DNA of 64,000 bases from Lepidodermella squamata. Taxonomy: Eukaryota; Animalia; Gastrotricha. The position numbers and the translations under genes are program-made. The notes beneath the pieces are model-generated. The model was not told the DNA's origin. It was given only the letters and a program-made list of their open reading frames with translations, and searched no databases. Shown here piece after piece: positions 18,701 to 59,747 of the stretch; position 1 is the stretch's first letter; the number at the start of each line of letters is the position of its first letter. The DNA is taken from the NCBI GenBank assembly GCA_047495785.1, contig JBLDXI010000010.1, positions 1,984,001 through 2,048,000 on the forward strand, written 5' to 3'.

Positions 18701-19213
18701 CATCAAATTTCTCACAGATGGCTTGAGCAATCGAATGATAATTCGGTGCTTTTTGTGTTTCCGCTTCAGATATTTCTCCTTAGAAAACACTGTTTTTTCT
18801 TTGAATGTCGAAGAATTTTCAACCAGCCTCGACACGACTTCAGAACCTTTAAACCCGGTCCGTTTCAACTCTTTAATTTCGTCTTCAGTCAATTTTTGAT
18901 TTTCAGGATTTTCAATTAAATTTCGATTATCGCCCGCAATTTCGCAGGGGTTATTAGCCGAGGTCGTTTCATCCTCGCCATCCATACCGTGAAATGCGAG
19001 ATTGTGAAAATGTTGCTCCTTAATTTCGTGAATTTCACTATCGACAACTTCTAGCAGTGTGCCGAATCGCAGGCCGACAACTTTTGCGGCGCTGAATTTC
19101 GCGTGGTGGATTTTGATTTTGCGACTCGAGTAGACGCGGTCGAGGAATACGTGGATGTTGTTGCATTCGATGAGGACAAAATCATTCTCGCGAATTATTC
19201 CAATTTCACTCAT
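15754..19213 (-). CDS. TRMT6: tRNA m1A58 methyltransferase non-catalytic subunit TRM6/GCD10, 2 exons
   Basis: Exon 1 (19213-18228) has DNRNL, ENSSTFKEKTVFSKEKYLKRKHKKH. Exon 2 (about 16033-15754) has SRPIVVF and QVLPGRTHPVIMMPGPSGYIL. Confidence 0.93.
17100..17660 (+). mobile_element. Degenerate Helitron2/Helentron Rep-domain fragment in the TRMT6 intron
   Basis: Frameshifted NSDLCPIFDINGIIRYLVGYVSKGE...RRIFQKFIGDRDYSAQEVMPQLIGLPLRNCTRK resembles the Helentron Rep motif-3 region (YxxxYxxK, then RxxSAQE, LxGLPL). Confidence 0.7.
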
Positions 19214-19600
19214 AATTCGATCGATTGAAAAATCAACAAATAGCAATCACAACAATTAAGATTAAAATTCTATTGGAAAATAAATAGATAAATTAAAAAG
19301 AAATTGAGCAATTAATTTTTCAAATATTTTTTCAAAGGTATAAAATGAGGTGTAAAAATTTGCGAATTTCTAGCGAAAAAGCTTAGAAAAATCACATTTT
19401 TCGCAATTTCTCAACAAATTAGGAAATTCGGTCGAATTATGTGCATTATTCAAAATTTAATTCGACTTTAAAATTTATTTTAACCCAAGAAATGATGGAT
19501 TGAAAATTAGGGAATACTTGGATTTTTTGAAGCTTTTTGGCTAGAAAACATCGCATTCCAATGATGAATCGTTTTAGTATCACTTTTTTAGAAACTTTTT

Positions 19601-22600
19601 TCACCAGTTTGGCACACCGGGAAACGTGTCCAGTTCATCGACCAGAGTACATAGTCTCAAGCCCTTTTCAACAACCATATCAACGGCGTCCTGCAGTTTC
19701 GCTTGGCTGGTCTGCGTCCTCGCCAGTGCCATGTACATCTCTTTAGCCCAGGGGCAAGCTTGCAACGCTCGAAACAGCACATTTTCCAGCTTTTTCGACC
19801 CAATTTTCGACTCGAACGCGATGTAAAACGCCCAGATAACGCAACTTCTCAACGAATTTGGAGAAACTAGAGATTTTTCGAAGTAGGACCGGATCATATT
19901 TTCAGCACCGCCAATCGAGCTCGGGTCGATTTTTGCGATTAAAGCGGTTAAAATCGAAAGCCAAGCGCTGGGTTGGTTGATTTTATGCGACATTGATCGC
20001 GTGAATTTGACGAAACTCGACGACATGAACGCCGGCTCTCGGATAGCGATTAGGCCTTGTAAAAACGCCGGGTTAGACGGGAAATCGTTCAAAGCGATCA
20101 AAACAATCTCTCTCAGGTGAGTTATCGATTTTATACTCGTTCGATAGTCGAAATTCGCGATGGAAACACGCGACCAGTGAAGACGTAGCGTGACTTGTTC
20201 CAAAAATCTCCGCACCGTCGAGTAAGGATTTAGCGAAGATTTCGACTTCGCAACCACATCGACTTGATTTAGCAGGGATGTTAGGACGAAATCGGCACTT
20301 GGTAGAGGGTTTTCGTTTTTCAAACGAGATACGAGGTACGTGAAGAGGGCGTAGCATTCGGCGACTTGGCAAATCAGCGGCTGGACCGGCATTAGGTGTT
20401 GTTCTGGCTGCTGGTCATCGCTGCCCGGAATGTTCGAGAATTTCAAAAATGGCACCAGTTGCTGGTCAACTTCAGCTTTGACCTAAGAGGTTAAAGGATA
20501 GAAGAATGAATTTAAAATCAAATTAGGTTAGCAAACTAAACAATTTCTCAACTCTTTTACATAATGATGAGGTAATAGGCGGTTTTATTGACGCGGAGAC
20601 CCAATTTCTTTCAAAGCACCTTAGTGCAACTCGTTCACGTCGCGGAAGAACCCCCCTTCGGTGTTTTTTTCTGATTACTGTACTGGAAGTTTTCCGAAGT
20701 GCGAGTTCTTCCGCGACGTGAACGAACTTAGTGCAACTAGAGTAGTTCGAGTAATTGGACTTGTTTCCATTTCATGTTTATAGACGACGAGCACGAGGAC
20801 CAAGAGCAATCAATCAGAAATGTCTTCCTGTACACGGTACAGTTTTGTCAAACTGGGGTGAGTCATCTGAATTTTCGGTCACATCGGTTTCTCCTTCTTC
20901 TTCTGATTTTGCAGACATGTCAGGGTCGTACTCCCATCGAGGCGCGGATCTGTCCGTGGAGCGGGGCAATGTAGTCGCGGACCGTAGTTTTCGGCGATCT
21001 TACGCTTTGGTAGCACCAGGAGTACTTAGGAAGCCTGAGAAAGTTTCTGGCGAGAAGTTCAAGCCGTGCCTGGCTGACCTACGGGACGGGTGGTGCCGAA
21101 CTGTCCCCAACTAGCTTGAACTACTAGAACGACCAGGTCACGGTAATAGACTGTTTTAGACCCTAAAAGCCAAAGGCTACTCACGAGGTAAGGCCATCAT
21201 GGTTACATTTTCAACTTCAATTTTTGAATTTCCTATTGGTTCGATTTTAATTGTTAACAGCCTTCCTTCATCTCTTAACTCTTAACTAAACTAAATAGGC
21301 ATGCAACTTACTTGATCAACATCGCCAATATCACCGCTGATTGCTCTTCGCAGCAAACACGACGCCAACAGCTTCAAAACCGGCCGAGTCACGCCTGGAT
21401 CGTCCACATTCGCGTCGACAACGCGGGAAACGTCAATGTAACCAGGCTCTGGCGCGGATTTCATGAACGTAAAATAGGCAGTTTGACTCGCCAAATGGCA
21501 TAGAGCACCCCAACTTGCGTACAGCTTCAATTGATGCGACATTGCAATCGCGGTTTCAGCCATTTTCAACGCCGAATTCAAGTTTTTCCCCAATTTCAAC
21601 TCAGCCTCACTGCATAACGCCCAAATTGCGAGATTATTGCGATTAGCCGGCTCTTTCAACACGTCTCGAATGAGATTTTTCACCCTTTTCGACCTCGAGT
21701 CGAAATTACTGGAATTTTCCTCCGATACACAGCATTTTATCTCTTTTTTCACGTAGCAACAAATCAAATGAGTTCGAAACGGTTCGTTCAAAATTCCGGC
21801 GATTTGGTTGAATGAATTATTGACGATTTCTCGAAATAAACCACGGTCATATTGGACCAATTTCGGCCGAGAATCAGCGTCGAAATTCATCGATCGGCAC
21901 GTAAAACTTGTTGAAAATGCGTCATTTTTCAGGTATGTATCCAACGGGTTCGCGATATCCAGGCCGAAAAATTCGAAAAACAGAAGCAAAATTCGATATT
22001 TATTTTCGGGCGCGGCGATTTTGATCAGGAATCGCGAAATATCGTCGAAAACCACCTGCCGTTCCGGGTCGTCGGTGTGGGGTGAATTTTCGGGTAGCGG
22101 TAAAATTCGCCGAGCTGTTCGAGATTCTTCAAGGTACGCCCAAATCATCGACCTTGAACTACCCTGGGGCGATTTTTCAATGACTAATCGATCAATTTCG
22201 TCTTCCAGCTCGAGATTTGATACGAAATTTTGGTTTTCAGTGCGATCTTTCGGGTCGTTTATGATTGCCGGGTTCCATTTCGCCCAGCCACAGGCGTTTC
22301 GAAGGCCGAACAGCGGAGCATTTGAGCTGAAATACAGCTCTAGCTCGTCGATAGCTTGAGTTCTTGGCATCGATTGAACAGGCTGGGGTGCGAAATACGT
22401 CAGTTCGATTTGGCACTGGAATAGGAGGACGGCTCGTTCTGTGAAACCAGCTTCTCGCAACATGTAGACCAGTGCGACAAAAATGTCTAAAATTCAAGAA
22501 AAACGCGCGGATTAACCTCAATTTTCGTAAGAAACAAATAATTTAAGCCGGGAAATTAACAATTGTGGGCTAATTTGTTAAAATTCATCGAAAGTTTACA

Positions 22601-23882
22601 TTTTAAACTTTTAAATTTTGCGAAACCGCGTTGATTTTTTCTAAATTCAATTGAATGACTTACATATCATTTGTTCCTCCAGATTTGGCCCAGCTTTATG
22701 CGATTTGATCGTGCCATCCAATATGTTCGAAATCGTACTTAGACACCTCGAGAAAGTCATCATTAGCTTATCGAACGAGAAACCAGCAAACCGCCGGCAA
22801 TGCGCCATAATACACTCCCACCACACGTCCGCATTATTCGGATGAACAAAGGCAATGTTTCGCCATTCTTCAGCCACAGCATCTTGATTAGCCATCGAAT
22901 TTCCCTTCAATTTTATTTTTTCAACCAGCAACCTCACATTGCCAGGATTTTGCGACAGCGCGCGGTCTAAAATCGCCAGCTTTTTCTCTAGCAACGCCGA
23001 TTCAGTCATTTGATCGCCAAATTTTGACAAATCGTTCTGAAAATCGACGAAATCAAGCCATAGCTGAACATTTTGGGGTTCGAAGCCAAGTCTTTTGTTG
23101 AAATCTTCAGTTTTCTGACGAATCGACGCTTTTTTCAACTCATCGTACGGCAAATCCAGGTTTTCAGTCGTAGTTTTCGTTGGCAAATCGTCGTGAATTG
23201 GCCGTAATCTCAAAACAGGAGGCAGGTCCAAAATCGATATTGGCGATTTTCGAATTCGAGCCGTCACGTCTTGAATTTTCATCAATTTTCGCAGTTGATT
23301 TCGGTCGAAATACCGCTTTTCCTTCGCCTTTTGCGCTTTTTTCTTGTCATTTTTTGCTAAAATTTGCTCCTTCTTCCGGTACATCAACTCGCCCTTTTTC
23401 GAATTTGACAGCGCGAATTGGGGAGATATATTGTAATATCGCGATAGATGGCCGTCGAAAATCGACCCGTATTTGACTAACGAGTGATTTGAAGCACGGT
23501 CGATTCGAAATGGAACAGGTTTATCCGCTGATTTTAGGCTAGCAATCGATATATCTTCCAGAAATAACGCACCTAGTGGAGCTTTTTGACCCGAAATTCC
23601 AGCATTTTTCGCTTGAACTTCAGCCTCGTCACGCTTGAGTAGCTTTCGCGGAATTTCTTCATCAGAATCGGCAAGATCGATCACTTCCTCCACGCCAATG
23701 CTGGACTCTGAATCTGAAGAGATGGCAACGACTTCTTTTTTCGGGACTGGAATGGTGAAACTGTCATTTTTCAGCCAATCTATTGCTGTTTGACTAGAAT
23801 TTCCAACTGCAGTCGCATCAAATTTTTCAATTCGAGTCTCATCGGGTTTACTTAGCCCGGAATAGGCCGGAAATAAACTCAT
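19601..23882 (-). CDS. NRDE2: Nuclear exosome regulator NRDE2, 3 exons
   Basis: Starts MSLFPAY. Contains LWLDFVDFQ, LREAGFTERAV, DDPERQVVFDDI and the C-terminal RALQACPWAK...GLRL. Exons are approximately 23882-22664, 22486-21313 and 20482-19601. Confidence 0.93.
20620..20738. mobile_element. Tiny hairpin insertion (MITE-like) in an NRDE2 intron
   Basis: Inverted repeat CGTTCACGTCGCGGAAGAAC / GTTCTTCCGCGACGTGAACG, bracketed by direct repeat CTTAGTGCAACT at 20620-20631 and 20727-20738. Confidence 0.7.
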
Positions 23883-24179
23883 TAAAAATCTAAGAATAAA
23901 ACAAATATTTGATTCAACAAAACATTTTAATAAATTTTTAACATCCCTTCGGGATCTTTGCAAATAAGACCAGAATGAAACTAAACAAGAGATAGTGTTG
24001 AATTTTTTCGTTGGCATGTGAAAAATTAGAGGAGAAAAGCCGGATAAATATCACCACAGAACGCTGTAAAAATGTTGCTCAAATAATTCCAGATCATTCG
24101 ACGCGTTAACACAGGAACGAATTGGGACAAGCTCGAAACAATTAATTTGAGATTTTTTTCGATCGAAATAAAGATGAGG

Positions 24180-24938
24180 TTAGAAGTAGGAATTTTGCAA
24201 TTCAAGTGATAGAATGTAGTATTTAGCGCCGCGTTCGCCGATTTGCCACGGCGACGATTCATCGACATGGAAGCCTAGTTTTTTCGTATAAAACGAAACA
24301 GCCGCCGTATTATGCGGAAATACTGTGAGCAATATCTTGTCCATTTGAGCCTTCAAAGCGATCAACTCGAGACTTTTCAGAATATAGCTACCAAGACCGC
24401 CTCGTTGAAATTGCCTTGAAACTTGCAACTCATAACTGGAAAACAAAAATATTGAAAATTTACAAAAATTCAGAATTTTGCGCTCAAATAAATTTCGAGC
24501 CGTTTCCGTTTAAAAAAAATCGAAATAATTTGCCTTACCAATATAAAACAGCTTGCGAGCCTTCGAGTTCGAAGCGAAAATGAGCAAAAGCGACTAGTCG
24601 TTTTGATTCCGATTCTTGAACGAGCAGAAATCTGGCCGTGTCATCTGTTAATTCGGCCAATTTTTTCGGTCGATCCCAGCCCCATGAAGACGACTCGTAG
24701 AGTTCTCGCATATTTTCTTCGACAAGCTTCATCGCTTCTTCTGCTACATTATTAGGCAGATCTTTCCGGGCTACGACAGTAACCTCAACAACACTTCTAA
24801 AAAAATTTAAAAATTAATGAATCGAATTATAAAAAATTGAACTAACCCTCGAAGTTTGAAGAATGTTTCGTTGAGATATTCAGCAAGATTTCGCCCGTTT
24901 GCATTGCGAACACGCACCTCAGGAGCAAAAAATGACAT
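24180..24938 (-). CDS. NAA40: N-alpha-acetyltransferase 40 (NatD), 3 exons
   Basis: LVEENMRELYESSSWGWD, AFAHFRFE, LY-YELQV, GLGSYIL, LTVFPHN, DESSP, YYILS are NAA40 GNAT motifs. Confidence 0.9.
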
Positions 24939-25498
24939 TTCAAATCCTAAAAATTACAAAAAAAATCATAATAAATTCCGTAGAAAAAATAGCGAAAATT
25001 TATTCATCTTTCCTCGAATTTTCCATCAATATAGTCAATGAAGGGCCGTTTTTCCGGCCCGGTTTTTCATTTGCTGTACAGGAGAAGAAGAAGACGGCAA
25101 CGACATATAAAACAACAACGATTAAACGACATGAACAATGAACAGTTTTTCACCATATATTTTAGTCGAATTATTTTTCCCACGACATATCTACATCGTT
25201 TTAATAGCTGACGTAACGGAAGAAATTCCACACTTCAATTTGAGTTGCTGCTGTATTCCGGGAATGAGAGACTTGCAAGTCAAGTAGCTTCCATTTATCA
25301 TTGAAGCAACAATCTGAGTGTCTTGCGCACATATTTCAGTCCAAAAAAATCAGGGATGGAAAGAACAAAAAACTGGTTCTCGTCATTTCTTATAAAATAT
25401 TCAAATATTTTTCCGAAATTATACGAAAAAAACGTAACAGGAGAGAGTGAGAGATATTAGCCTGGCACATGCGCGATTTTTTTTCCGGTATAACTTAA

Positions 25499-27189
<1,691 letters not shown>

Positions 27190-28331
27190 GAGGAAGATAG
27201 CACAACTTGCCCAAATACGTATTCAATGTCTAGTAAATAACAAGATTGAGACTCGCAACTACAATGAAAAATGATATTAGTATCAACAAGCGACAGGAGC
27301 TTTGAAATAAGACCAAATAAGACATTTTAAATTCTTGAGGTATTCCTCTGGAGAATGGGAGTCAAAAAACCTCAAAACTTCATAGCTCATAGCTATCTAA
27401 TATCAGAACCTATAACCTATAGTTAAACACTCAATTCCTACTGACGCCTGGATCCTCAACTTAGAAATGCTCGTAGCAAGAGTGTAGAGTGTAGATTGCA
27501 TTGTAAGTAAAATTAAAATGATAGCGAACAAGCTATTAACTTAGAAAAGATACAGCGGTTAAGCGAGAGTAAAGGGTAACATGCGAAAAGTAAAGATGCC
27601 TTTTTTCTTGCGTCCTCGGATGAATGAACTAAGGAGTCGATGAACTCCGAACTCAGCGTCACAGGTAAGAACGATGACCCGCTTGAAGTCCCGCCCCAAA
27701 CTGTACTATAACCCTGCATAACAGAATGAATTGGTATAAAAAAAATTTAAATGCAAACCTTAATAAACTATTTATAAAATGAGAAAAGTTGCTACTACAA
27801 TAATTCCATTTTTAAATAGGTCATATATTAATGAAAAACTGAGGCTGCAGATGGCACTTTGCGATTGATTGATGGGTTTGGGCTCATCGGACTGTTGCAG
27901 CTTACCGCTTACCTCGATCTTTCTCTCGCGACATTCTCACCAACCACCGTCTGTAACCCATGAAAGTTGAAGAATTGGCGGTCACTTCCCCTTCAATATC
28001 GAATATCGCAATTTCACCATGCTCCAGACGGGGTCTGACGTACAACGGGGCCATATTTTGCCGTGGACGTTTTGGTAGTTAATAGTAATGGCGCTTGGCG
28101 TTCGTAGTTAGATTAAGACGCTGTACAAGAATAAAGTGATCAATTGAGTGAAATATGATCTGCGGCCATCTTTTTCCTTCAATTTTTAATTATATTGTGA
28201 GCACCCTTTCAGAATTTAGCACTGATGTTAGTTGCTACTGCTAGTCGCATCCATATAATTTGTTTATTAATTGCGTTGGGTTTTTTTATGGCTTCATCTA
28301 GACAATTTGACAGTATTATTATTGAGGAAAC

Positions 28332-29456
28332 ATGGATGTCCTCGCTAATCAGCCCATTGTACTGGACAACGGGTCAGGCATGATCAAAGCAGGCTTTGCT
28401 GGTGACCAAATTCCCAAGTATATCTTTCCAAACTACGTTGGCCGACCCAAACACGTTCGTGTCATGGCCGGTGGACTAGAAGGTGACACTTTCATTGGAC
28501 CACGTGCTGAGGAGCACCGCGGCTTGCTTAGAATAAATTATCCGATGGAACATGGAATCGTCACTGACTGGGACGACATGGAACGCATTTGGCACTTTCT
28601 ACTTTGCTCCAAAGATCAAATGTACATAAAACCGGAAGAGCATCCGGTTCTGCTCACCGAAGCTCCACTGAACCCGGCTCGCAATCGCGAGCGCGCTGCT
28701 CAGATTTTCTTTGAAACATTCGGAACGCCGGCTCTTTTCATGTCAATTCAAGCTGTTCTTAGCTTGTATTCAACTGGTCGAACAACAGGCATTGTTTTAG
28801 ACAGTGGTGATGGTGTCACTCATGCCGTGCCAATCTACGAGGGCTATGCCCTCACTCACAGCATTCAGCGGGCTGATATTGCCGGGCGTGACGTGACCAA
28901 CTATTTGCGTCTCCTTTTAAGAAAAGAGGCGCGTCATTTTAAAACCAGTGCCGAATTTGAGGTTGTACGTCAAATCAAAGAACGCGCCTGCTTTGTATCT
29001 TCGAACATTCAAAAGGACGAAATCAATCCGCCGGAGAAGATGGCCTATACCCTGCCCGACGGCAGTCAATTCGAGTTAGGTATGAGCCGTTTCCGCGCTC
29101 CGGAAGTTCTCTTCCGCCCTGATCTCATCGGCGATGAATCGCCTGGAATTCACGAGTTGCTAACTTTCGGCATTCAACGCGCTGATCTTGAACTGCGAAA
29201 GGTGCTGTATTCGAACATTATTTTATCAGGAGGTTGCACCCTACTGAAAGGATTCGGCGAACGAATTCTAGGCGAGGTGAAAAAGTTGGCGCCTAAGGAT
29301 ATTAAAATCAAAATTTCCGCGCCCGCTGAACGGTTGTACTCGACGTGGATGGGCGGGTCAATTTTGGCCTCGCTGGACACTTTCAAACGCATGTGGGTTT
29401 CGAAAAAGGAATATGATTCCGAAGGTGCTCGCATTCTCCACAAAAAGTTTTTCTAG
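28332..29456 (+). CDS. ACTR1: Centractin / actin-related protein 1 (dynactin filament), intronless
   Basis: 374-aa ORF with Arp1-specific motifs [28 protein letters not shown] and [17 protein letters not shown]. Confidence 0.96.
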
Positions 29457-29621
29457 GTCTTCTGCAAACCGCAATTGTGTGTCTTAATTATCCGATTTAA
29501 TCTGCTTTTTCTCTGTCTGCAATTCCTGGTGCGGCTGCTGCTCTTTGATTTTGTTTATTATAATAGTAATTATTAAAGTGAAATTTGCTAATTATGTTTT
29601 GTTATTTTAGGGTATTTTAAG

Positions 29622-32056
29622 ATGACTAGTCGCCATAACATAAGAGCCCGTGTTTATGTCGGGCGTCTCCCCCATCGAGCTCAGGAGCGAGATGTGATGA
29701 AGTTTTTCAAGTCCTACGGTCGCATCATCGACATTCAGCTGAAAAACGGTTACGGATTTGTCGAGTTCGACGACGCCCGTGATGCGGATGACGCCGTCCA
29801 TGACATGAATGGGAAGGAAATGTGTGGCGAACGCGTGACTATCGAGCATGCTAAGGGACCACCGCGTCGTGTCGTCGAGCGCGAACGCTTCGGCGGCCGC
29901 AGGGGAGGCCGTCGTTCCCGCTCCAGGTCCCGATCTCGATCCCGTGGTCGCCGCGATCGCCGCCGGTCAAAGTCTCGTTCCCGATCCCGATCCCGGTCTC
30001 CCCGCCGTCGCGATTCGCCACCCGCCCGCCACCGAACTCGCAGTCGATCGACCTCGGCTCGCAAGGATTCAAAGAAATCAGCGACCCGCTCGCCTGCTAA
30101 GATCTACCGAGTTGAAATTGAAAACCTGCCGGCTGATGCTGGTCGCAAGGTAAGATTACTGAAAATTTCATTTATAGCTAAATGTCAAAGTAAATTCAGC
30201 TGAGAACAAGTTGAGCGGAGCAACCAATCACTTGGCGCTCGATTTTTGACCAATTTTTTCAATCAAATGTACATCTGTGATTAAAATTTGAATAAATTTC
30301 ATTCGTAAAAAATCTTCTAGAAACAAAGCTATTTTTTTGAGAAATTCGAAAATTTTTGATTATTTTTGATTGATTTTCCTTGAAAAGCTAAATTCTCGTC
30401 TGCCTTGCGTCCGTTATGGATGATGATGATATTGGTGGCCTAACGCGTTCGTTTCGTTTCGCTCGCTCGCTCGCGATTTGATGCCAAAGTCGTGCCACCG
30501 CCATGACCACTACCTCTACCACTACACTCGTGCATGTTCGTGCGTAAACGTAAAAATCCAAATTCGTACGTACCAGCGCTGTCCTAACGTGCGGCTTTGA
30601 TGTTCTACGTAAGTAAACATGATGTTCATGATGATGATAACAACATTTGGCACAGACTACCAACTAGCCCGTGATTGATCATGATTTTAATGATGTAAGT
30701 ACGCCATTGATTTCCGACCTCTGGGCGCTTTTTACTCGACAAATCCGTGCGATTGTTTCCTTTCCATTCCATTCGTACGATTTTCACCGAAACCACCGAG
30801 CTGACGCGCTTTTCCGGCGGAACGAGCGACGCCTGAATTTAATTTAATTTTTTTCGATCAGTTTTGTTCAGCTCATGTTTTTTAAAATGATTTTCTGACC
30901 TGCCTTTAAACAATCCATGTTTTTCAGGAAGTGGAAGAGTTTATGAGTGCGGCTGGAAAGGTTGTTGGTTGCGAAGTTCACGACGATGGCAAAGGGTAAG
31001 CTCATTGATTTTTCAATTTTCAAGCTACTTTCTAGCTCGGCTGGACCATATTTTGAATTTTTTCAAATTCAGTTATGCGAAAACGGGTCTTGGTTTTAGC
31101 GGAACTAAACATTGAATACTTGATTCGTCCAACTATTTTAAAAATTTTCGGAATTTCACGATAAATTTACTCAATTCAAAAATTATTTCGACATCACGAC
31201 GTGATAAAAAATTCCTTTTAAACTTTGCTCCGACACGATATCCTGTCTCGAAAAATTACCAGAAGGAGAGTAGTAAACCACATCTTGAATACTTCAACAA
31301 TCGAGTAGTCTAGAAGTTTGATATGTTTGGTCAGGCTGAGCTTCAAGACCACTCGATGTATTTTTGCAAAATATGTAAAATTATTCGAAAATTCCTAAAT
31401 CTGGTCTGATCTTCAGGGAAACTATGTATATGTTTCGTTTGATTTCTCAGGTTAAAGTCGATTTTTTTTAAATTTCGTTTAACCAAGAATTATAATTTAT
31501 TGTAAATTAATTTTTTGTACCGAGTACTTAATTTAAGGCTAAATAATGTAAAATCTCAAATTTATTTGTTGAACAATTTCCTCAATATTTTTAAGCTTTA
31601 TACCGCCAAATTAGGCTGAAATATCAAAAAATAATGCCTAATCCTGTTTGTTTTTCTCTATATAGGTATGTTGAGTTCGACAGCGAGAAATCTGTGGCCA
31701 CTGCTCTTGAGACGCTAACCGAGTTCAAAGACGCGAAGCTGATTCTAACGAAAGCCGCCGCGAAGAACGGAGCGGCTAAAGCGTCGCGATCGCGCTCGGC
31801 CTCGCGCAGCCGCAGCCGCTCACTGAGTGGCTCGCGTTCGCGCTCTCGCTCTCACAGCCCCGGCAATGGCAAAAACGGCAATGGCAAGGCGGCGAACGGC
31901 GAGGCGAACGGCAAGGCTCGAAGCCGATCGCGCAGCGGCTCGCGTTCGAGTCGATCGCGGTCTCGCAGCGCCTCGCCGCCGGCCCGCAACGGCAACGGCG
32001 CCGCGGCTGTTGCGCCCAACGAAGACGATTCGCGAAGCAGCGCCAGCGATTCTTGA
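29622..32056 (+). CDS. SR splicing factor, SRSF4/5/6 (B52)-like, 3 coding exons
   Basis: Exons 29622-30148, 30928-30995 and 31666-32056. RRM1 (RVYVGRLP, KNGYGFVEFDDARDADDAV, ERVTIEHAKG), RS repeats, a degenerate second RRM and a C-terminal RS region. Confidence 0.9.
30388..30608 (+). other. Candidate poison (PTC) cassette exon in the SR gene intron
   Basis: Acceptor AG at 30386-30387; in-frame TGA TGA TGA at 30421-30429; consensus donors GTAAGT at 30609 and 30695. The segment is GC-richer than the flanking intron. Confidence 0.6.
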
Positions 32057-32496
32057 ACGATCGGTGTGAATACATGAAATAACCACGAAAATTGCTCAGA
32101 GAAAGTAGTTGCGGTTGCCCATTTTGTCTTCGTCTTCTTCTTCTTTTCATACGCGTACAACAATTTTTCGTCCTGTCTCAATCATCATCTTACAATTTTG
32201 TCCTTCGGGTTTGATTCTTGTATATCAATCTTCAATCGCTTGGGACGAATTTTGAAGTAAATAAACAAAGCATCGTCATGAGCAGTCACGGTGTAAATAA
32301 CTAAATATATAGTCAGTACCATCGTGATTATTTCTCTCTCTTCTGTATCTTTCGAATGAATTTAGGCGCTTCGTGTCATATACACACTTACTTGTACGTC
32401 ATTGGATACTGTAAAACCGCAATTTTCGAAGTATGACTGATTTTTTGTTCCAATTTTAGGTGGTTGAGGTTATTTTCTAATTTGAAACTTTGAAAC

Positions 32497-33850
32497 ATGC
32501 GGTTCGGTCCGGCCGTTCGTCTGCTCATCCATCAGCACAACCTCAACCCGACGCTTATCAAAGCTACAGGTAATTCGATTTCTTCAACTTGGGGAAGACT
32601 TCTTGAATTTTTTCGATTTTTCAAATGTTCATTGAAATTGAAAAAAATTTAAGAAATTGAAATCATTTCTGAAAAAATGAGTAGTTCTTAGTGTATCGTA
32701 TGAAACCTCAAACCTTGAAGCCTGTTTTCTTATGAATTTAAAACTACGAGGTCTATCTATACTCGATCGTCCGATGATACCGTATCAATCGGAGTTGAAT
32801 TTCAAATACAAGGGATTTTCAACACTGATTGCTTGATGATGGAATTTATCCCGAGCAAACCCGAAATTTGCCGATTTTTATTCTTTCGCTAATTTTTGCA
32901 TTATATTTTCAAAAGTTTCAGATTTTTTGAATTAACGAGTTTCAAATTTTTTTGCAATATTATGAATTACTGCTGCTCATATATTTTAGCGAATTTTTCC
33001 ATGATCAAGTGTACTCTCAAAACTGATTCGTGATTTTTGAAAATTTTTGACAATTTCAGGACCTCATGGAACTTTGATGAAGAGCGATGTATTAGCCGCG
33101 CTTGCCTCTGGTCTGAAACCAGGCGCCGCAGCCACATCTCAAACCGCCTCGAAACCAGCTGCATCGCCGCAGAAGCCCGGCGCTATCCCAGGCGCATCGC
33201 CATTCTCGGATCTGGCGCTGAACGCAAGCCAGAAACAGCTCGGCTCACTGCTAGCCACTGCCAAATTCACCGCTCCCCACGCCTATCAAACAATCGACGT
33301 GAACCTATCCCGCGTCGATTCAGTCCTGAAGTCACTTGTATCAAAGCAGAGCCCACCGAATTTCCTACACCATTTACGGGTCGCAACTCTACTGAAAACA
33401 ACGGCTAAAGTTTTAGCCAGAATCCACCTGAGTAATGAGCAGTTGAATGCCGCAGATATCGCGGTTTCATTCAGACAACCCGATGGCGCAGAGGTCCAGG
33501 CCGTGTTGAGAAAAGTCCTGTCGATGAGTGTCGTCGATGTCGCGTCGTTTCTGCAGGCCGAGAAGCCCTCAGGCCTAGAGGCGAGTGGAAGCGCGGCTTC
33601 GGTAGCTTTCCACGCCTCGGCTGGCGTGTTGCGTCGCGTTTCGGCCGTTGTAAAACCGCCGCAGGTTGCTGCTGTGGCTGTGACTCAGCTTCCACTGGCG
33701 CTGGTGCCGCGAAATGACGGGAAGAAGGGCGCGACTCTTGCGCCGTTTTACTCGGTGACGCTGTCTTACGATTGCGCCCGCATTGACGACTCGGCCGCGG
33801 CTGCGTTTCTCAACGCGATGGCCGAGGCTTTGGCTGCGCCTGGGCTTTGA
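32497..33850 (+). CDS. Pyruvate dehydrogenase E3-binding protein (PDHX-like), lacking a lipoyl domain, 2 exons
   Basis: Exon 32497-32569 plus about 33059-33850. E3-binding domain GPAVRLL...ATGPHGTLMKSDV, then a degenerate acyltransferase fold ending VTLSYDCARIDD with no catalytic His. Confidence 0.75.
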
Positions 33851-39134: not shown

Positions 39135-41730
39135 GGGTCTAAATAAGTGCACCACCTAAAATGAGGTTCCAGCACTAAATTTGTGAGTGCGTCCACCTAA
39201 AATGCAAACAGGCGGCACTAAATCTTCGCGCCACCTAAATAATGAATCCAGCACTAAATAATCGGTGTGGCACTAAATAATAGCTTAGGCGCGCCGCCGA
39301 GCAATATTTAAGGCGGCTCAGTCATCATATCATCAACTGCATCATCATCATCTCGTCATTATTATTTCTTGGTTATTATTCTGAAATGGAGGAAGTGCCC
39401 CTCTTAATCATCGATACGGCCGAAAATCTGCCGCCGCCGCAACCAGCCAGTCGTCGACGCGGCAAGGAGCAGGTCTGGACGTGTGTTCAACAGTTTGAGG
39501 ACGAGGAGGCTGCCGACGATCACGTCGCGGACACCGGCACAGCTTGGTGGTGGAATAACGGCCGCTCGTACCTCACCAACCGCGGCATGATGCACTACTT
39601 CGACTGCTCACACCCTGGTTGCGAAAGTAAGCTCCGAAAGGTTATTCATGCCGATTCGCTGTACGTGTCGCTGGAAGAAAACGACGTCAACCATGATCAT
39701 TCGCAACCGAAGAAAGAAAAACAACGCGGTTTGCCCCCAGCAACTCGGCGCATCATCGATAAGCTTTTCCTTGACGGTAAAACAAAGCCTCTCTCGATTT
39801 TAATGGCGTTCAGGGAAAAAGGAATTCCAGAGCCGAAGGATTCGCAACTCTCGAGTTACTTGGCCACCCTTCGGAAGAAACACCACGGCCCGACGAAGGT
39901 CAGCATCGCCGCGCTACGCCATTTTGCTGAGGAGCACTCCAAGGAGTCTACAACGTCAAGGGATGACCCTTTCGTAGTGTCCTCCTACTTCAACTATGAT
40001 CAAATTGATGAGAAGAAAAGCGTGTGTCGAATCGCACTAACGACGCGCCGGCTCAGTAAATACGCCAAGAAGGTCGGCGCACACGACCTTCACATCGACG
40101 CGACGTACAAGACCAACGTCAACGGTTACCCGGTCATCTTGGTTGGCTTCAGTGACAAGGTTCGTATTGCTGTCGATTCTTATCAATTTTTTTTAATTTT
40201 TTACAATTTCCTCATTAGGACCGACATTTTCACCCGATTATGGTGGCGGTGTGCACCGGCGAGGCTGAGGACGACTACGAGTTCGTGCTGAGAGCGGTCA
40301 AAGACCACTTGTCCGAATGGCTTCCGGCGCTCGCCGTCTCAGACGCTGCTAAGGCGATTAAGAGGGCGATCCGAGCAGTGTTTGCCGAAGTGAAGCACGC
40401 CATCTGCTGGTTTCATGTCACGAAAAATCTCAAGCAAGAGTATCTACCAACGATCAAAGACCCCAAGCTGCGCGATCAATTCAAGGACGACGTCTACTCC
40501 ATGCAACTGTGCTGGTCGCCTGCTGTGTTCCAGGTCGTGTCTCAGTTGTTTGTCAGCAAATGGGAGGCGGTGCCGGAAGCGGCGGCGTGTTTGGCGGCTT
40601 TCAAGAAGCAGTACCTGGAAAAGAACAACACGTGGTACCAAGGCTACGCTATCGGCTCAATGGTCAACAACAACGGCCAAGAAGGCAAGAACGGCCGCAT
40701 CAAGACCGATTACACCTTTCGGAGTCGTCTGCCCGTCATGCAGCTGCTTGAAGTTGCGAAAAAGATGCTCGGTCGCTGGTCGTGGGAGCGGAACAAGAAG
40801 TGCGTCAACTACAAGAAGTTCTTCACAGCGCCAACAATCAAGGACGAAGTTTGGGAAAAGGCGCGTGTCTGGGCTCGAGATGTTGGCACTGGTCTTCGAT
40901 CGCAGCCGAGCGGCAATGGAACTCTGTACGTGTGGACGAAGCAGTCAGCTTTGGCAGAAGGTGTTGCTGCTACTGCTGCTGCTGCCGCTGTCCCGAAGGG
41001 ACCCCCGCCAGCGAAGCGAGCCCGTGGTCGACCGCCGAAGTCGAATCCACCGAAGGACGAGCTGTCTCAAGCTGTCTGGGAAGCTCTCTTGGCAAGAAAC
41101 AAGCCTCTAGACAAAGATGTTGGCCCTCAGGTGGCTGAAATATTCTCGAAATTCTCGTGGCCTGATTTCGACTCGTTCTCCAAGTTCAATAAGCGTTTCG
41201 GGTGAGAATTCTTTCAAGTTTTTATGGCGTATTAATAGGTTATTTGTATTAATAGGATGGTTTTGATCGACGGTGAGCAGCAAGTGTGCAATTGCTGGAA
41301 TTTTCTCAAAACATACCACTGTTACCACGTCCTTGGTATACAGATGCGCCTGGGCGACGTTTCTTTCCCGGTCGAACTTGCCGAGCAGCTACCGCTTGGG
41401 CCTAAAGCTAAGCGAGGCCGCAAACGAAAAGCTCAACCCGCCCTGGTGGTCCAAGACTGAGCTATTTATTTTTAATTGTTTAATGAGCCATTCATCCGTA
41501 GCGAGTCGGATTGCTCAGCTGTAAAAGAAAGCAATGATTTCGTAATTTTGTAAACTAATAAATGATGATCTCTTGATGGTATATTCTCAGTTCTAATTAA
41601 AGCAAAATTAGGTGGTGGCTACGCATTTTTAGTGCTGGAGTTGTTGATTTAGTCGCAAATAGGATTAGTGCGAGTGACTTTCAAATTTAGTGCTGGAACC
41701 TTATTTTTAGTAGGTGCAGTTGGCACACCC
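39135..41730 (+). mobile_element. Full-length Mutator-like (MULE) DNA transposon
   Basis: Perfect 9-bp TSD GTAGGAAAT at 39126-39134 and 41731-41739; GGGT...ACCC termini; imperfect TIRs with repeated GCACTAAA motifs. Confidence 0.93.
39386..41460 (+). CDS. MULE transposase, 3 exons, apparently intact
   Basis: Exons 39386-40159, 40219-41201 and 41256-41460 splice in frame. LHIDATYK (D), VSDAAKAI (D), CWFH, NNGQEGKN (E), N-terminal C-x4-C...HxH finger, C-terminal SWIM CNC...CYH, AT-hook-like RGRPP. Confidence 0.92.
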
Positions 41731-51966: not shown

Positions 51967-54900
51967 TCACAAAACGTAGCGAACGAATGGCATGGCCATC
52001 ATCGAGCCATCATCGCCGACACACGCCATGTCGAGGCGGATTGATTTCTTGTTACCCACCAAAGCCGAAATCTTGGGATGATGCGTCTCTATCAGTTGGC
52101 GAATGGATAAATCCAACTGCTGCTGACTCTTCTCCTGTGACATCCGCGCCTTGTTGTAGATTACGTAATTGCCAATCGCAACCATACCAACTACGACGCC
52201 ATCCCGATTGAGTCTCTTCAGAATCTCACCCAGTGTAACTCCGGGATTTTCAAAGTTGAAACGGGTCCAAATCGTCCAACTCGGAGCTTTGGGAGCATAG
52301 GGTGGTTTCAACGTGGCATCACGAGGATTGCTCATAATCACAACAGGTTTGCTCAGGTCGAAATGGGTGTTTCTGAACTTGGATAACTGCGAATGGCCCT
52401 AGACGAATTTGATAAGTTCCAAGCAAACCAGACCAGCTACAATCGCTGTTGTAGTTGCAATAGCTGGCGTTATCTGTAACAACTTCAATCAACAATGAAT
52501 GACAAAAAAGATCGAACGAACCTTTCCAGCGATAAGTTTACTCTTCTGCCGATTTGCAGGTTCGATGAAGTAGTTCTCAGCCCGGCAGTTTGAAGCTGCG
52601 ACAATGAAGTCGAGGTGAAAATTGGAATCGTCATCCTTCTCGAATTCAATCGGGGTAATCGAACTGCCATCGATTTCAGCCTGCTCTGGAAGCTTCGCTT
52701 GTAACTCCGCGACCTTCGCCTTCATTTGCTCAGCTCGCTCTTCTTTCAAAATTTGCAAATCACGGTCATTTTCGGCAATCAAGGAATTGCCACGAGGTTC
52801 GAATTTCAGTTCAACCTTAGAAGCGATGGCTTGAATTTTCGACTTGTCCCGAATCTGGGTGATACCGAACAAGCTAGCGTAAAGATTGGCTGCTGAACTG
52901 ACGAAATCGACATGAAGCTCCTGTAAGAAAAGGTTCGAGAAACCTTAGAACTAGAGATTCAAACTCACATTGTCCAAATCAAAGTTCAAAGCTCGCGGGA
53001 ATCTTTTGGCATTGTCCCAAAATGGCTGCCCATCGGATCCAAGTTGATCCTGGGGGAACCTTTCGGTCAACTCAGCAATTTCCGAGTGAAATAACTCTTG
53101 AAATTTCGAGCAAGCCCAGCTGACGCACTGTTCGAAGTTGGTTGGTCGATTTTCTGCGGCGAGAAACTGCACCAAGCTCTCGACGGCTTCCAATCGTTCA
53201 ACTTGCTGGAGATTCGCCAGGAATTGCTCGCCCTCTGCCGCGTATCTTTTGACGTATTGAGCTGGCGAGACGAACAAATCGTGAAATTGTTCACGGGCCC
53301 AGTGAAGCGTATGCTCGATGGCGTTTGGGAAGCTTTTGATCGTACACTGGGCGTAGGACGTTTCGTCAGAAGCCGACAGGCCAGTCGAATAAGGCTCGGT
53401 CAAAGATTGCAATATTACCTAAAGAAAAAGGTTCCAGAACTTGATTTGAGGTTCAAAATCGAACCTAGAAAATCGAGTACTAAAACGCTTCAATTTAGCG
53501 CTACAAAGTTCCGAAGTTCCAAATTAGGATATATCGAAAAAGAAACCTTTGTGGATCCGGTTTCGCCCTTCGTCGCAGATTCGAACATTGGCTTCAAATG
53601 GTAGATGCAACGCTTGTCCAAGTACTCCCTAGCCTGGAGATTATCCAACGCGTTGACAACCGCATCCAAAACGTCGAAAAAATCTTCGTCGTAGATATCT
53701 TCGGTTTCGGGCCCAACTTTGTTCAAATGATACTCGATATTCAAATCGCGGTTAATTGCCTTGACCGCAGCAGCGGCAACCTTCGATTTAGGCTCTTTCA
53801 AATCGTTTTGCCGGAATAGGAATTGGCGGTTGAGATTCGATCGTTCGATGACGTCCATGTCGGTTGTAAGGAGCTTGCCAGCTTTCGAACAAGCCACGCC
53901 CATCATCGCAAAGTTTTTGAGTAACTCGCAGCCGATTGCGCCGGTGCCAACAACAAACAATTTGAGCTTTTCAAGCTTCTCCTGAAATTGCTGGCCGAAA
54001 ATTGCGATTTGGCTGGCGTAGCGACTAGGTTCAGATGGGAAGTCGATGAGTTTTTGCGTTTCAGGTAGACATTCCAAGGCGTCAAAGTACATGAATTGAT
54101 GTAGCGGGACAAATTTCCCAGATACAGCTTTGAAGACTTCTTGAGCCGCGAATCCTCCGATAACAGCGTTCATCGGGCACAAGTTACCGGTTGCTTGAAG
54201 AGCGAAGGCCTTAGCGATTTGCTTTTCGCTTTCTTTTTCGAAACGTTCAGAGAATCTTCGAGCAAATTCTTCGTTTCTAGCAGTTGGCGAGTCGCCGAAT
54301 TCGCCGAGCAAGCAGAAGGCGCGGTGGATCGTAGATTCCCGGCCCATTTTTCCGAAATCGGTGATTAGGAACCTAGGTTCAGCTACGGCTTCAGCTAGTG
54401 GCTTGAATGACATAGATTTGCTGGTTTTGACCTGCAAATAGAAAATTCATACAGGACCGACAATCCAACAATCCAAATTACCTGGGTAACTATGCATTTA
54501 TTGCTTGGTGGCATCTCGCAATCGGCCTCAATAGAGAAAATATCAGCGGTTATCGAAGCAGAGATGCGAAAAGGTCCCCAAGTTCGCCGATCCCCTTCCG
54601 CCCCAGAAACCGATCGATCTAGGGCGAATGTTACCAGATTGCCCTGAGCAAAACCCCTCGAACCCGTTTGCTCGACCAGCTTGACCAAATGAGGCGATGA
54701 CGGGTCGCTGCTACGGTTGATTGAACCGACAAGGCGAGACAGAGGCTCGCCAGCTGTTGGATCGATAACTTCGAATCTGTCGCCGAAATCGCAGAAGAGC
54801 TGGCCGAATAAACCGCGAGTTGACGCTAGAATGAACTTGACCCCGTTCAAGTGACACCATTTGCCAATTTCCTTTGTTTTTTCGTCAATCACGTGATCGC

Positions 54901-55371
54901 AGAGAACCACAACCTGAGCAAGTATAAATGTCCAGCAATTAAATTTCTATAAATATTGGAAATTTACGTGGAATTTGGAGACGAAATCCACGGTAAGGCT
55001 CTCGTCAGCCGCTTCCACGCGAACATAAGGGTTCAGCTCAGCAAATCGATTCCTGCTCGCTTCGGCTCGATTTTTGTTCAGGTCATTAGCGGTCAAATAG
55101 AACTTGAAAGATGCGAAATAAAATTTTGAAATAAAATTTATTAGATTTTTACCTGGGTTCCAAGATCCGAAATTTGCGTCGCTTTTGTGTCGTGAAGCGT
55201 GACAGAGCGAACGCCGCCTAAAATGACGTTTTTCGCGATTTCGGCGCCCAAGCCATTGAGTCCGCTGATGAGAACATCCGCGCCAGCCATTTTACGCATC
55301 GTTGACTCGCCGAGAGTGTAAAGCTGTCGCGAATACAAAGACTCGTCGATTGCGCTATTATTCTTAGTCAT
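51967..55371 (-). CDS. Divergent UBA1-type ubiquitin-like activating enzyme E1, 7 exons, about 1000 aa
   Basis: [42 protein letters not shown], catalytic [18 protein letters not shown] (Cys at 53344-53346), [25 protein letters not shown] and a C-terminal UFD. Exons splice in frame. Confidence 0.95.
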
Positions 55372-55677
55372 AGCCGCCGAGATTTACAAGAAAATTCGCA
55401 AATTCTGTCTAAAATTTGAAAATTCATATGATTTACTCGTGAGTAATGGAGATGGAGAGATGAATCGGCAGTTCTGAAATCTGAAATATCAGGTTGTAGG
55501 ATTTCAGAAAGGTCGAAGCCAAGGTCAATGAGAGTAATAAAATCCAGAAAAAAAACGAAATAGGAAAACTACCGAATCATTTATCGACTCTGTTTTTATG
55601 TTTTGGTAGCAAAATTATAAAATCTATAGCTTCGTAATTTAAAAAATTCAAAAATTTCAAAAAAATGTGCAGAGAAT

Positions 55678-56286
55678 ATCTTTTAGCGGAACCAAATTTG
55701 ACTGTTGCGGAATCTAATTTTAGATGGGCAATAGGTCGCTTTTCAAATATTTCCATAAAATATTTAAGGCAAGATAAATGAAGAAAGCGTCTTATAGATA
55801 TAATTACACGCTGATGAATAGGTTCTATGCTAGATAATTGAGCAGACAAAAAGTGAGCAACGAAAATTGAGCAAGGGCTTTTTAGCAACGATATGAGAGC
55901 AAACGAAATTAGAGCAAATTTAATAATTAATTGTAGCTCTTATTTGGCAGACCGTCATAACAGCAAATACCCAAAACAGCAAACGCGACAGAACAGCAGA
56001 AACACGATGCATCTTTTACATAGTAAGTTTTCGCTGTTTTGTCGCGAAATAAAAAATTTGCTGTTTTGTCGCATTTGCTGTTCTGCGAAGCTGCTGTTTT
56101 GTCGCCGTTTTGTCGCGGCATTATTTATTGTAAACACAATTTGTTCTAAAGTCGTTTTGCTCTAATTTCGTTTGCTCTTATATCGCTGCTCAAAAGCCCT
56201 TGCTCTATTTTCGTTGCTCAATAAGCATAGAACCTTGAAAGTTTCAAAAAGTGAAAATTCCAAATTTTGGCTCCGCTAAAAGATAG
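55678..56286. mobile_element. MITE with ATCTTTTAGCGGAACCAAA termini, containing a nested GGTTCTATG-family MITE (55821-56234) that itself carries an insertion
   Basis: Inverted ends; the inner element shares TIR and GAGCAA subrepeats with 34477/38999. Confidence 0.7.
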
Positions 56287-56923
56287 GCATTCTGGAAAAA
56301 CATTTAAACTTGAAAACATTTAAATTTTAAAATTCGAATTAAATTCTTTTGAATTTTGAATCGAAAATTCGAAATTATTTAATCGATTTAAATGAAAGTC
56401 GTCGATTTGTCACGTCTTTCCCAATACTATTTACAATTGGCCTCTCTGTGACAATTTTAGGCTTCAGAAGATGCCGATCTGAAACTCCGGGTAAAATAAT
56501 TTGTACTCTAGTTGACGGTCTAAAAGGTATAGGGGAACTGAAATAACAAGGTGCCCAATTATCGATAAAAAAGAAAATGTCTATAATTTTCGAAACATTG
56601 GAAAGATTTAGCACTGGAACCTTGTGCCAATAATCCAAACTAAAATTGAATAAAAATTATTCAATATTTCCGCTCTTCAATGCGAATTTTTTGCAAATCA
56701 GAATCATTATTATCGAAAAAAGGGAACACGTGCGCTAAGTGTTACGATTCAACTTTCACGCGGCCTCATCGCCAAGCACGTGCGACGTTGGCCGAGCCGT
56801 TTCAAATCTACTAAATAATATAAAAGTCAATAACGAATCTTGAATTCACTGTAAATCGATATATTCATTTCACGCAAAGATTTGATAGATCAATCAACAT
56901 TGTGTTCTAATCGAAAATAAATC

Positions 56924-57184
56924 ATGTCCGACCGCTTCGACATCACGTTCAACATATTCGGCCACGGTGAGCTGTACAGGTTGAACGTATCGCCTAAAGA
57001 CACGGTGCGTGACGTTATTCGAATGCTGCGATCAGTGGCTGGCGAGCAAGCCATTACGGACAGCGTCAACATTATGCATGGCAATGAACAGCTCGATGAA
57101 AATATGACGCTGGCTCAGTACGGCATCCAACCGCGCCACACCATCCACGTTATTCCGCGCATTCAAGGCGGCCGTCACGCTTGA
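56924..57184 (+). CDS. Novel ubiquitin-like protein precursor, 86 aa, ending GG-RHA
   Basis: Beta-grasp pattern aligns with ubiquitin: LNVSPKDTV, QLDENMTLAQYGIQ, TIHVIPRIQGG. TATA-like TATAAAA near 56819; intronless. Confidence 0.9.
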   Translation: MSDRFDITFNIFGHGELYRLNVSPKDTVRDVIRMLRSVAGEQAITDSVNIMHGNEQLDENMTLAQYGIQPRHTIHVIPRIQGGRHA

Positions 57185-58951: not shown

Positions 58952-59747
58952 ATGGCTTGTAATTTAACCGGCGCTCTTCGACTGCAACACGATTTGAACA
59001 AGTAAATACAACAATTTTAACACAAATTATTGTATAATCGAATTGTTTCCAATTTTAGGGTGCTTACGAATCCGCACTCATGCGGAACTGCGGCGCCGGT
59101 CGATGACAATTTATTCCAGTGGCGAGGCTTCATCTTTGGGCCGGCTAAATCGCCCTATGCTATGGGCATTTTTCGCGTTCAACTCGATTTCCCGCTAAAC
59201 TACCCTGCCTCGCCGCCTATCGTCAAGTTTCTCGACAACATGTTCCACCCTAATAGTAATAATTATCTTCATAGCATTTTTGAAAAAATTCCTAGACTTT
59301 TTTATAGATATTTTGAATAAATTTTAGATTTTTATATAAATTGGTAATTTCAAAAATTTAATTTTTTTAATTTTTCTATATTTTTTTATTCTTAATTTTA
59401 ATTTTAGTGAAATTTTGAAAATGTTTCAATAATTTATTAGAGAATAAATAAATTAAAAAAATTCAACTTTTTCGAACTGTTTTAATTTTTTTCAATGCTC
59501 GCCCGATTCTTCTACCTTAGTTAATTCAAGCGGTGGCGTTTGCGTCAGTCACTTGAAGCAAGGAAATTGGGATCCTAGCATGGATGTCGCCGCTATTTTG
59601 GAGTGTCTAGCTTCACTTTTGCTGAACCCGAATCCAAATAGCCACATTAATCGCGACGCTGCCGACTTGCTGCTGAAAAATCCCGCCGAGTACGAATCTC
59701 GCTGCCGCGAAATCGCCCGTCAAACCAGCCAACGGCCAAGGAGCTAA
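58952..59747 (+). CDS. Ubiquitin-conjugating enzyme E2, divergent RAD6/UBE2D-like, 3 exons
   Basis: Exons 58952-59001, 59059-59255 and 59521-59747. W..IFGPAKSPY..GIF, FPLNYPASPP, MFHPNINSSGGVCVSHL (HPN and catalytic Cys), SLLLNPNPNS. Confidence 0.93.

Follow-up and report, generated by a model that had tools for sequence, protein, structure and literature searches.

E1 gene and adjacent ubiquitin-like gene

We analysed a 64,000-nucleotide stretch of DNA from the gastrotrich Lepidodermella squamata (contig JBLDXI010000010.1, positions 1,984,001 to 2,048,000; hereafter called the window, with position 1 as its first letter). It carries a gene for a UBA1-type E1 (ubiquitin-activating enzyme) next to a divergently oriented gene for a ubiquitin-like modifier (Ubl). 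It is the E1 that assigns each modifier to its cascade, and few E1–Ubl pairs are known from animals. In the window E1, most of the pocket that in UBA1 receives Arg72 of ubiquitin is replaced. With a rough probability of 0.55, we propose that this enzyme is a UBA1-derived, UBA7-like paralogue whose groove for the modifier tail is remodelled for the adjacent, private Ubl system and which would charge ubiquitin poorly.

The E1 gene was delineated from the open reading frame map and by reading of the exon junctions. It extends over 51967-55371 on the minus strand and comprises seven exons with 1008 codons. The two genes are composed as follows.

55371-55153, minus strand: E1 exon 1
55102-54968, minus strand: E1 exon 2
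54913-54482, minus strand: E1 exon 3
54431-53547, minus strand: E1 exon 4
53418-52969, minus strand: E1 exon 5
52920-52522, minus strand: E1 exon 6
52473-51970, minus strand: E1 exon 7, followed by the stop codon
56924-57184, plus strand: ubiquitin-like gene, 86 residues

The E1 introns measure 50, 54, 50, 128, 48 and 48 nt and are of the GT-AG type and in phase 0 throughout. Pfam searches with the exons identified ThiF (1e-47), E1_4HB, UBA_E1_SCCH (in two pieces) and E1_UFD. In HMMER searches, exon 4 matched human UBA1 best (E = 7e-95), with UBA7 and UBA6 behind, and the alignments were collinear with the UBA1, UBA6 and UBA7 structures. Given the domains on the exons and the match of exon 4 to human UBA1, the predicted product has the canonical layout of a single-chain E1. 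The UFD resembled that of human UBA1 weakly (E about 1e-3). The FCCH region (exon 3, 54482-54913) gave no Pfam match at E = 0.01, whereas the flanking domains scored strongly. This part, which contacts the body of ubiquitin, may have diverged as much as the tail groove.

The Ubl product matched the Pfam families Rad60-SLD and ubiquitin (HMMER to ubiquitin, E = 3e-6). Its tail reads HVIPRIQGG and is followed by RHA. Compared with ubiquitin, the HMMER alignment shows R42->N, L71->P, a retained R72, L73->I and R74->Q, followed by Gly-Gly, in line with an earlier reading of the sequence alone (the sequence-only reading), which had noted R42N, R74Q and the retention of Arg72.

Substitutions in the tail groove

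Residue equivalences were taken from the HMMER alignment with human UBA1 (9mc4_A, native numbering), which is unambiguous up to Y618. The equivalent residues of the window E1 and human UBA1 are S555 and N606, K557 and Q608, Y567 and Y618, G570 and S621, S572 and D623, and C582 and C632. The elements concerned are located as follows.

53344-53588, minus strand: strand and crossover loop lining the groove for the Ubl tail, codons 544-582 up to the catalytic Cys582, aligned by HMMER to human UBA1 residues 595-632; the segment is split by intron 4
53553-53555, minus strand: Ser555, codon TCC, at the position of human N606 (yeast N574) in the Arg72 pocket
53547-53549, minus strand: Lys557, codon AAG, with which exon 4 ends; equivalent to human Q608, yeast Q576 and UBA3 R190
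53374-53382, minus strand: Gly570-Leu571-Ser572, with Gly570 at the S621 and Ser572 at the D623 position
53362-53367, minus strand: acidic pair Asp575-Glu576 at Cys-7/Cys-6; in human UBA7 the residues equally far from the catalytic Cys599 are Glu592-Asp593

The sequence-only reading had proposed the exchanges Q608->K, S621->G and D623->S. The alignment with human UBA1 agrees with all three and adds N606->S. Ubiquitin R42 and R72 engage Q576, S589 and D591 of the yeast enzyme, which correspond to human Q608, S621 and D623, and with Arg at all three positions the mutant enzyme xUba1 is about 1,500-fold less effective at activating wild-type ubiquitin; UBA6 has E601, H614 and D616 at these positions (PMC5290280). 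This concurs with the earlier statement that the positions contact ubiquitin R42 and R72 and are those mutated in engineered transfer cascades. The Arg72 pocket of the yeast enzyme consists of N574, Q576, Y586 and D591 (PMC3731359). Three of these four residues are replaced in the window E1 (N606S, Q608K and D623S in human numbering), and Y618 is retained. Arg72 and the negatively charged pocket of the crossover loop have been called pivotal for ubiquitin specificity in a 2025 review (PMC12355090). In UBA3, the equivalent of Gln576 is Arg190, to which the rejection of ubiquitin Arg72 has been assigned, and the NEDD8 E1 discriminates against modifiers with Arg, Lys or His at position 72 (PMC3731359); the remark of the sequence-only reading that a basic residue at this position of UBA3 excludes ubiquitin was thus well founded.

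Further changes in the groove are S621G, G599A and P612Q. The crossover loop is one residue longer than that of human UBA1, the insertion being placed after P624. If the alignment is anchored from the side of the catalytic Cys, Ala occupies the D623 position, so that the acidic residue is gone under both anchorings. Charges are altered by K604->T, T603->E, L601->K, Q608->K, D623->S and P625->D, which together leave the net charge of the groove unaltered. The earlier suggestion that the enzyme fits a less basic Ubl is not clearly borne out: the charges are reshuffled with zero net change, Arg72 of the Ubl would face Lys557, and there is no clean charge match.

Since Lys557 is encoded by the last codon of exon 4, its identity hangs on the splice site of intron 4. 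Two sequencing runs were consulted, a DNA run (X1) and a second run (X2) that was taken as a transcriptome because it has almost no depth in intergenic DNA.

53419-53546, minus strand: E1 intron 4, 128 nt, GT..AG; in X2 the joint 53416->53545 skips 128 nt, with the cut placed +2

The sequence-only reading had advised confirmation of the 53547/53418 junction by cDNA. Spliced X2 contigs, which derive from a second copy of the gene, use exactly this junction and skip the five other predicted introns as well. When the window sequence was read for other donor or acceptor sites nearby that would give Gln at position 557, none was found. With these sites absent and the junction backed by transcripts, an alternative splice restoring Gln was ruled out.

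Rarity and clustering of the substitutions

A MAFFT alignment was made of the 150 E1 representatives closest to the window E1, the whole library having been clustered at 50% identity with one representative per cluster. At the Q608 column, 135 of these have Q, five L, three E and one each H, A and S, and neither K nor R occurs; the D623 column contains D in 135 sequences. K and R were likewise absent from the Q608 column in a wider motif count of about 290 E1s (248 proteins and 44 metagenomic loci).

We then considered near-invariant columns, defined as the 126 alignment columns that are at least 90% conserved across 105 full-length E1s. The window E1 deviates at eight of them, compared with a median of four for the other E1s and 9-28 for members of the UBA7 clade. 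Residues 544-572 contain nine of the conserved columns, and five of the eight departures (L544M, G548A, Q557K, P561Q and D572S) fall there (hypergeometric P = 2.7e-5). The other full-length E1s alter at most three of these nine columns, and two of the three E1s that reach this number belong to the UBA7 clade. By contrast, all near-invariant columns are retained at residues 351-500 (38/38) and 801-850 (20/20), and the catalytic Cys582 is present. Because departures are few overall and clustered in the groove, and because the columns for ATP binding and active adenylation are intact, the alignment indicates that the tail groove is remodelled in a targeted way and not by general decay.

Among the three departures outside the tail-groove segment is codon 879 (52355-52357, minus strand), where Asp replaces the Asn of the FLNLALP motif (human N928, 91% conserved).

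These data bear on the possibility that the window E1 still activates ubiquitin, either alone or together with the Ubl in the manner of UBA6 with FAT10, the substitutions being tolerated or compensated. Its adenylation and catalytic residues are all intact, Tyr618 of the pocket is retained and acidic residues remain in the loop. In addition, the Ubl has kept Arg72 and Gly-Gly, so that a pocket accepting Arg72 would still be needed, and UBA7 binds an LRLRGG tail without Gln608 or Asp623. However, UBA6 as a known dual enzyme retains the Asp of the pocket, Arg at the three positions lowers ubiquitin activation about 1,500-fold in xUba1, and a basic residue at the Q608 column is present in no sampled E1 with a ubiquitin-type pocket. 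Continued activation of ubiquitin is in our view unlikely.

Phylogenetic placement and distribution

A tree of 30 sequences, among them no named vertebrate UBA1, was calculated with IQ-TREE under LG+C20 with posterior mean site frequencies (PMSF). The window E1 was sister to five vertebrate sequences of the UBA7 clade (support 96/98), this group lying inside animal UBA1, and it was placed outside the UBA6 clade. A topology holding it with arthropod UBA1-like sequences was rejected by the approximately unbiased (AU) test (p = 0.018). The branch leading to the window E1 is long (1.36), three of ten UBA7 signature columns are found in it, compared with four in a nematode UBA1, and the E2 encoded nearby (see below) is not UBE2L6-like. 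For these reasons the sister relationship to UBA7 is suggestive only, and orthology is unproven. The long branch and an identity of at most 47% to any E1 found argue for a paralogue rather than the housekeeping UBA1.

Orthologues of the E1 were found neither by a HMMER search of exon 4 against 1.84 billion representatives (best match 48% identical) nor by a word search using the same exon (top match about 52%), nor in the JGI metagenomes, where 67 loci were all ordinary UBA1s with 42-45% identity over the full length. A word search and an exact look-up gave no orthologue of the Ubl. No relative of either protein was present in IMG/VR; since, moreover, the E1 gene contains spliceosomal introns and its product groups with animal E1s, a viral origin of the pair was dismissed. 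A search of the literature for a comparable E1 paralogue or gene cluster yielded nothing relevant.

Divergent UBA1-like paralogues with altered crossover loops also occur in crayfish, leech and tick, and those of crayfish and leech are without Asp623. In the MAFFT alignment, the tick sequence reads VPADAIKHFP at the location of the catalytic-Cys motif. No description of these paralogues was found.

Gene cluster and its surroundings

The E1, the Ubl, an E2 (ubiquitin-conjugating enzyme) and two USPs are encoded within 12 kb. Further features of this cluster are listed below.

59030-59747, plus strand: exons of the E2 (UBC-fold), with Ubc4/UBE2D and Rad6/UBE2A, not UBE2L6, as best solved matches
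55677-56285, strand not assigned: foldback repeat, similar to miniature inverted-repeat transposable elements (MITE-like), located in the spacer that separates E1 and Ubl; its inverted repeats are 23 nt (terminal) and 65 nt (inner) long

The neighbourhood of E1 and Ubl is present in both copies, and one X1 contig runs from exon 1 of the E1 to the Ubl. The spacer between the two genes is 1563 nt long in the window copy compared with 828 nt in the second copy. Over the foldback repeat, word depth in X1 rises to 2,000-27,000, compared with about 40-150 elsewhere, and the insertion appears specific to the window copy.

Collinearity with the window extends for about 15 kb (18720-33850) on contigs of a related species from the ENA metagenomes; the ARP1 encoded there is 96% identical to that of the window at the protein level and 77% at the DNA level. 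Synteny stops before the E1–Ubl cluster. The related-species contigs carry GBP-type genes where the window differs, so the surroundings of the cluster are not conserved. Outside the collinear part, at 39386-41205 on the plus strand, lie two long open reading frames of 301 and 321 residues, which by eye resemble a transposase-type gene.

Proposed function and evidence against it

In the mechanism that we favour, the modifier activated by the window E1 would be the divergent Ubl, whose gene lies 1.5 kb away on the opposite strand; the E2 of the cluster would accept the Ubl from the E1, and its processing and removal would fall to the two USPs. Ubiquitin would be charged poorly, as the Gln/Asp pocket is gone and Lys is found instead. 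The Ubl tail Pro71-Arg72-Ile73-Gln74-Gly-Gly would be held by other contacts. Asp575 and Glu576 may provide these, since the equivalent Glu592 of UBA7 bonds Arg155 in the ISG15 tail and its mutation lowers transfer (PMC10409785). The copy in the window is possibly defective, and the functional E1 would be encoded by the expressed second copy, with which the window copy shares about 90% identity. In this way the window E1 would be a natural counterpart of xUba1, of the Arg190 gate of UBA3 and of UBA7.

A stronger version of this proposal is a naturally orthogonal cascade, in which ubiquitin is excluded by Lys557 together with the missing Gln/Asp pocket, relocated acidic residues grip the Pro-Arg-Ile-Gln-Gly-Gly tail and the enzyme represents an invertebrate E1 sister to the UBA7 lineage. 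We put this forward tentatively, as a whole it being rather doubtful.

Several lines of evidence weigh against the favoured reading. The first concerns the tail itself. The Ubl retains Arg at position 72, and by analogy with UBA3, Lys557 should repel it. Furthermore, the tail interface between UBA7 and ISG15 has been judged unlikely to set specificity (PMC10409785). For this reason, the rewiring may accompany a private partnership rather than act as its sole gate. The claim of the sequence-only reading that this E1 disfavours ubiquitin thus stands in part: poor charging of ubiquitin is plausible and the departures are concentrated in the groove, while the tail interface, from the UBA7 precedent, may not be what determines specificity.

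The clash predicted between Lys557 and Arg72 could also mean that the window E1 is dedicated to another non-ubiquitin modifier, one lacking a basic residue 72, and that its adjacency to the 86-residue Ubl is coincidental. However, the divergent pairing of E1 and Ubl occurs in both copies, the E2 and two USPs lie alongside, and the Gly-Gly of the Ubl tail is processable. We regard such a coincidence as very unlikely.

Secondly, no orthologue was obtained by any route, and the 40 best-supported differences between window and second copy do not extend to the key codons in 53340-53590.

Thirdly, the frame of the window E1 is interrupted, as assembled, by a single stop codon.

52399-52401, minus strand: in-frame TAG at codon 865 in the open reading frame map, at the position of human Q914 and directly upstream of the UFD

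Behind this TAG, 143 further codons are open. A small intron excising it was considered and rejected, because the available GT..AG combinations delete conserved residues or measure 18 nt. Possible explanations for the TAG are a null allele, an error in the assembly or a site of read-through.

Finally, the E1 contigs in X2 are about 88-91% identical to the window and thus represent the second copy, not the window copy, and in several bins the depth of E1 in X2 matches the second-copy contigs alone. The window E1 copy may be silent, degraded, poorly expressed or null. In X1, contigs exactly matching the window copy (word depth about 40) are present together with second-copy contigs (about 60-74). 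With a depth ratio of window copy to second copy close to 1:2, three copies or unequal haplotypes of this region may be present.

These findings raise the question whether the E1 copy in the window represents a null allele or a pseudogene undergoing decay, with Lys557 and the other changes being a functionally meaningless part of that decay. Besides the in-frame TAG, the repeat insertion in the spacer, absent from the second copy, and the lower depth of the exact-copy contigs in X1 are consistent with this explanation. So is the finding that X2 yields E1 contigs of the second copy only in most bins, even though one X2 contig covers the Ubl with 100% identity to the window over 56850-57150. On the other hand, the window copy retains 118 of the 126 near-invariant columns, has canonical splice sites throughout and all exons in phase, and stays open beyond the TAG. 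The deviations, moreover, are concentrated in one functional segment. Among the listed best 40 differences, the conserved codons 796-815 differ between window and second copy by eight synonymous and no nonsynonymous exchanges, whereas those in the variable linker (codons 746-793) are mostly nonsynonymous. The synonymous-only pattern at codons 796-815 points to past purifying selection and against long-standing decay. Decay as the source of the groove substitutions therefore seems quite improbable.

If the pocket excludes ubiquitin, the window E1 and its Ubl would be a natural version of the pairs engineered at the same three positions, and the system would be a test case for how selectivity is shared between recognition of the tail and of the body of a modifier. 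If the sister relationship to UBA7 is true, dedicated UBA1-derived, UBA7-like E1s would predate the vertebrates. With E1, Ubl, E2 and USPs so close together, this compact system is amenable to standard charging assays.

Comparison with known E1 systems

With UBA1 of human and yeast, the window E1 shares the domain order (ThiF halves, 4HB, SCCH and UFD), the ATP-binding motifs, the context of the catalytic Cys and the length. It differs from UBA1 in the low identity (at most 47%), the replaced Arg72 pocket, the additional residue in the crossover loop and the in-frame stop. Where the ubiquitin-specific UBA1 has Asn606, Gln608, Tyr618 and Asp623, the window E1 has Ser, Lys, Tyr and Ser.

UBA6, the E1 for ubiquitin and FAT10, is likewise a second UBA1-family E1 with an altered Q608 position (E601) and its own E2. 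However, it retains D616 and activates ubiquitin, and the window E1 does not belong to its clade.

The NEDD8 E1 (APPBP1-UBA3) has a basic residue, Arg190, at the same column (Gln576/Gln608) as Lys557. It differs in being heterodimeric and belonging to another E1 branch, and NEDD8 has Ala72, whereas the window Ubl keeps Arg. With respect to a gate of the UBA3 type, Lys557 is thus present, yet Arg occupies position 72 of the presumed partner.

In the engineered xUba1/xUB pair, Q608, S621 and D623 are all changed and a basic residue is brought in, as in the window E1. The modifiers differ: xUB carries R42E and R72E, whereas the window Ubl has R42N and R74Q with R72 kept, so that E1 and Ubl do not complement each other by a plain exchange of charges as in the engineered pair.

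UBA7 (UBE1L) is a UBA1-derived E1 of vertebrates that serves a non-ubiquitin modifier, ISG15. Among the E1s compared, it alone lacks a comparable set of groove residues. Human UBA7 (8se9_A) has S570, T572, Y582 and S587 at the N606, Q608, Y618 and D623 positions, a longer crossover loop and the acidic pair E592/D593 at Cys-7/-6. Its partner ISG15, with the tail LRLRGG, retains Arg at the equivalent of position 72; from this precedent, retention of Arg72 in the window Ubl is compatible with the loss of Gln608 and Asp623. The two systems differ in that ISG15 is a two-domain protein ending in LRLRGG whereas the window Ubl is a single domain ending in RIQGG, in the E2 (UBE2L6 compared with a Ubc4/Rad6-like enzyme) and in the Lys at the Q608 column of the window E1. 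A homologue of the ISG15 pathway was ruled out on account of the E2, with Ubc4/UBE2D and Rad6 as best matches, and of the Ubl, single-domain with RIQGG-RHA at its end. If the orthogonal cascade exists, it would represent a solution to modifier selectivity unlike those of UBA1, UBA3 and UBA7.

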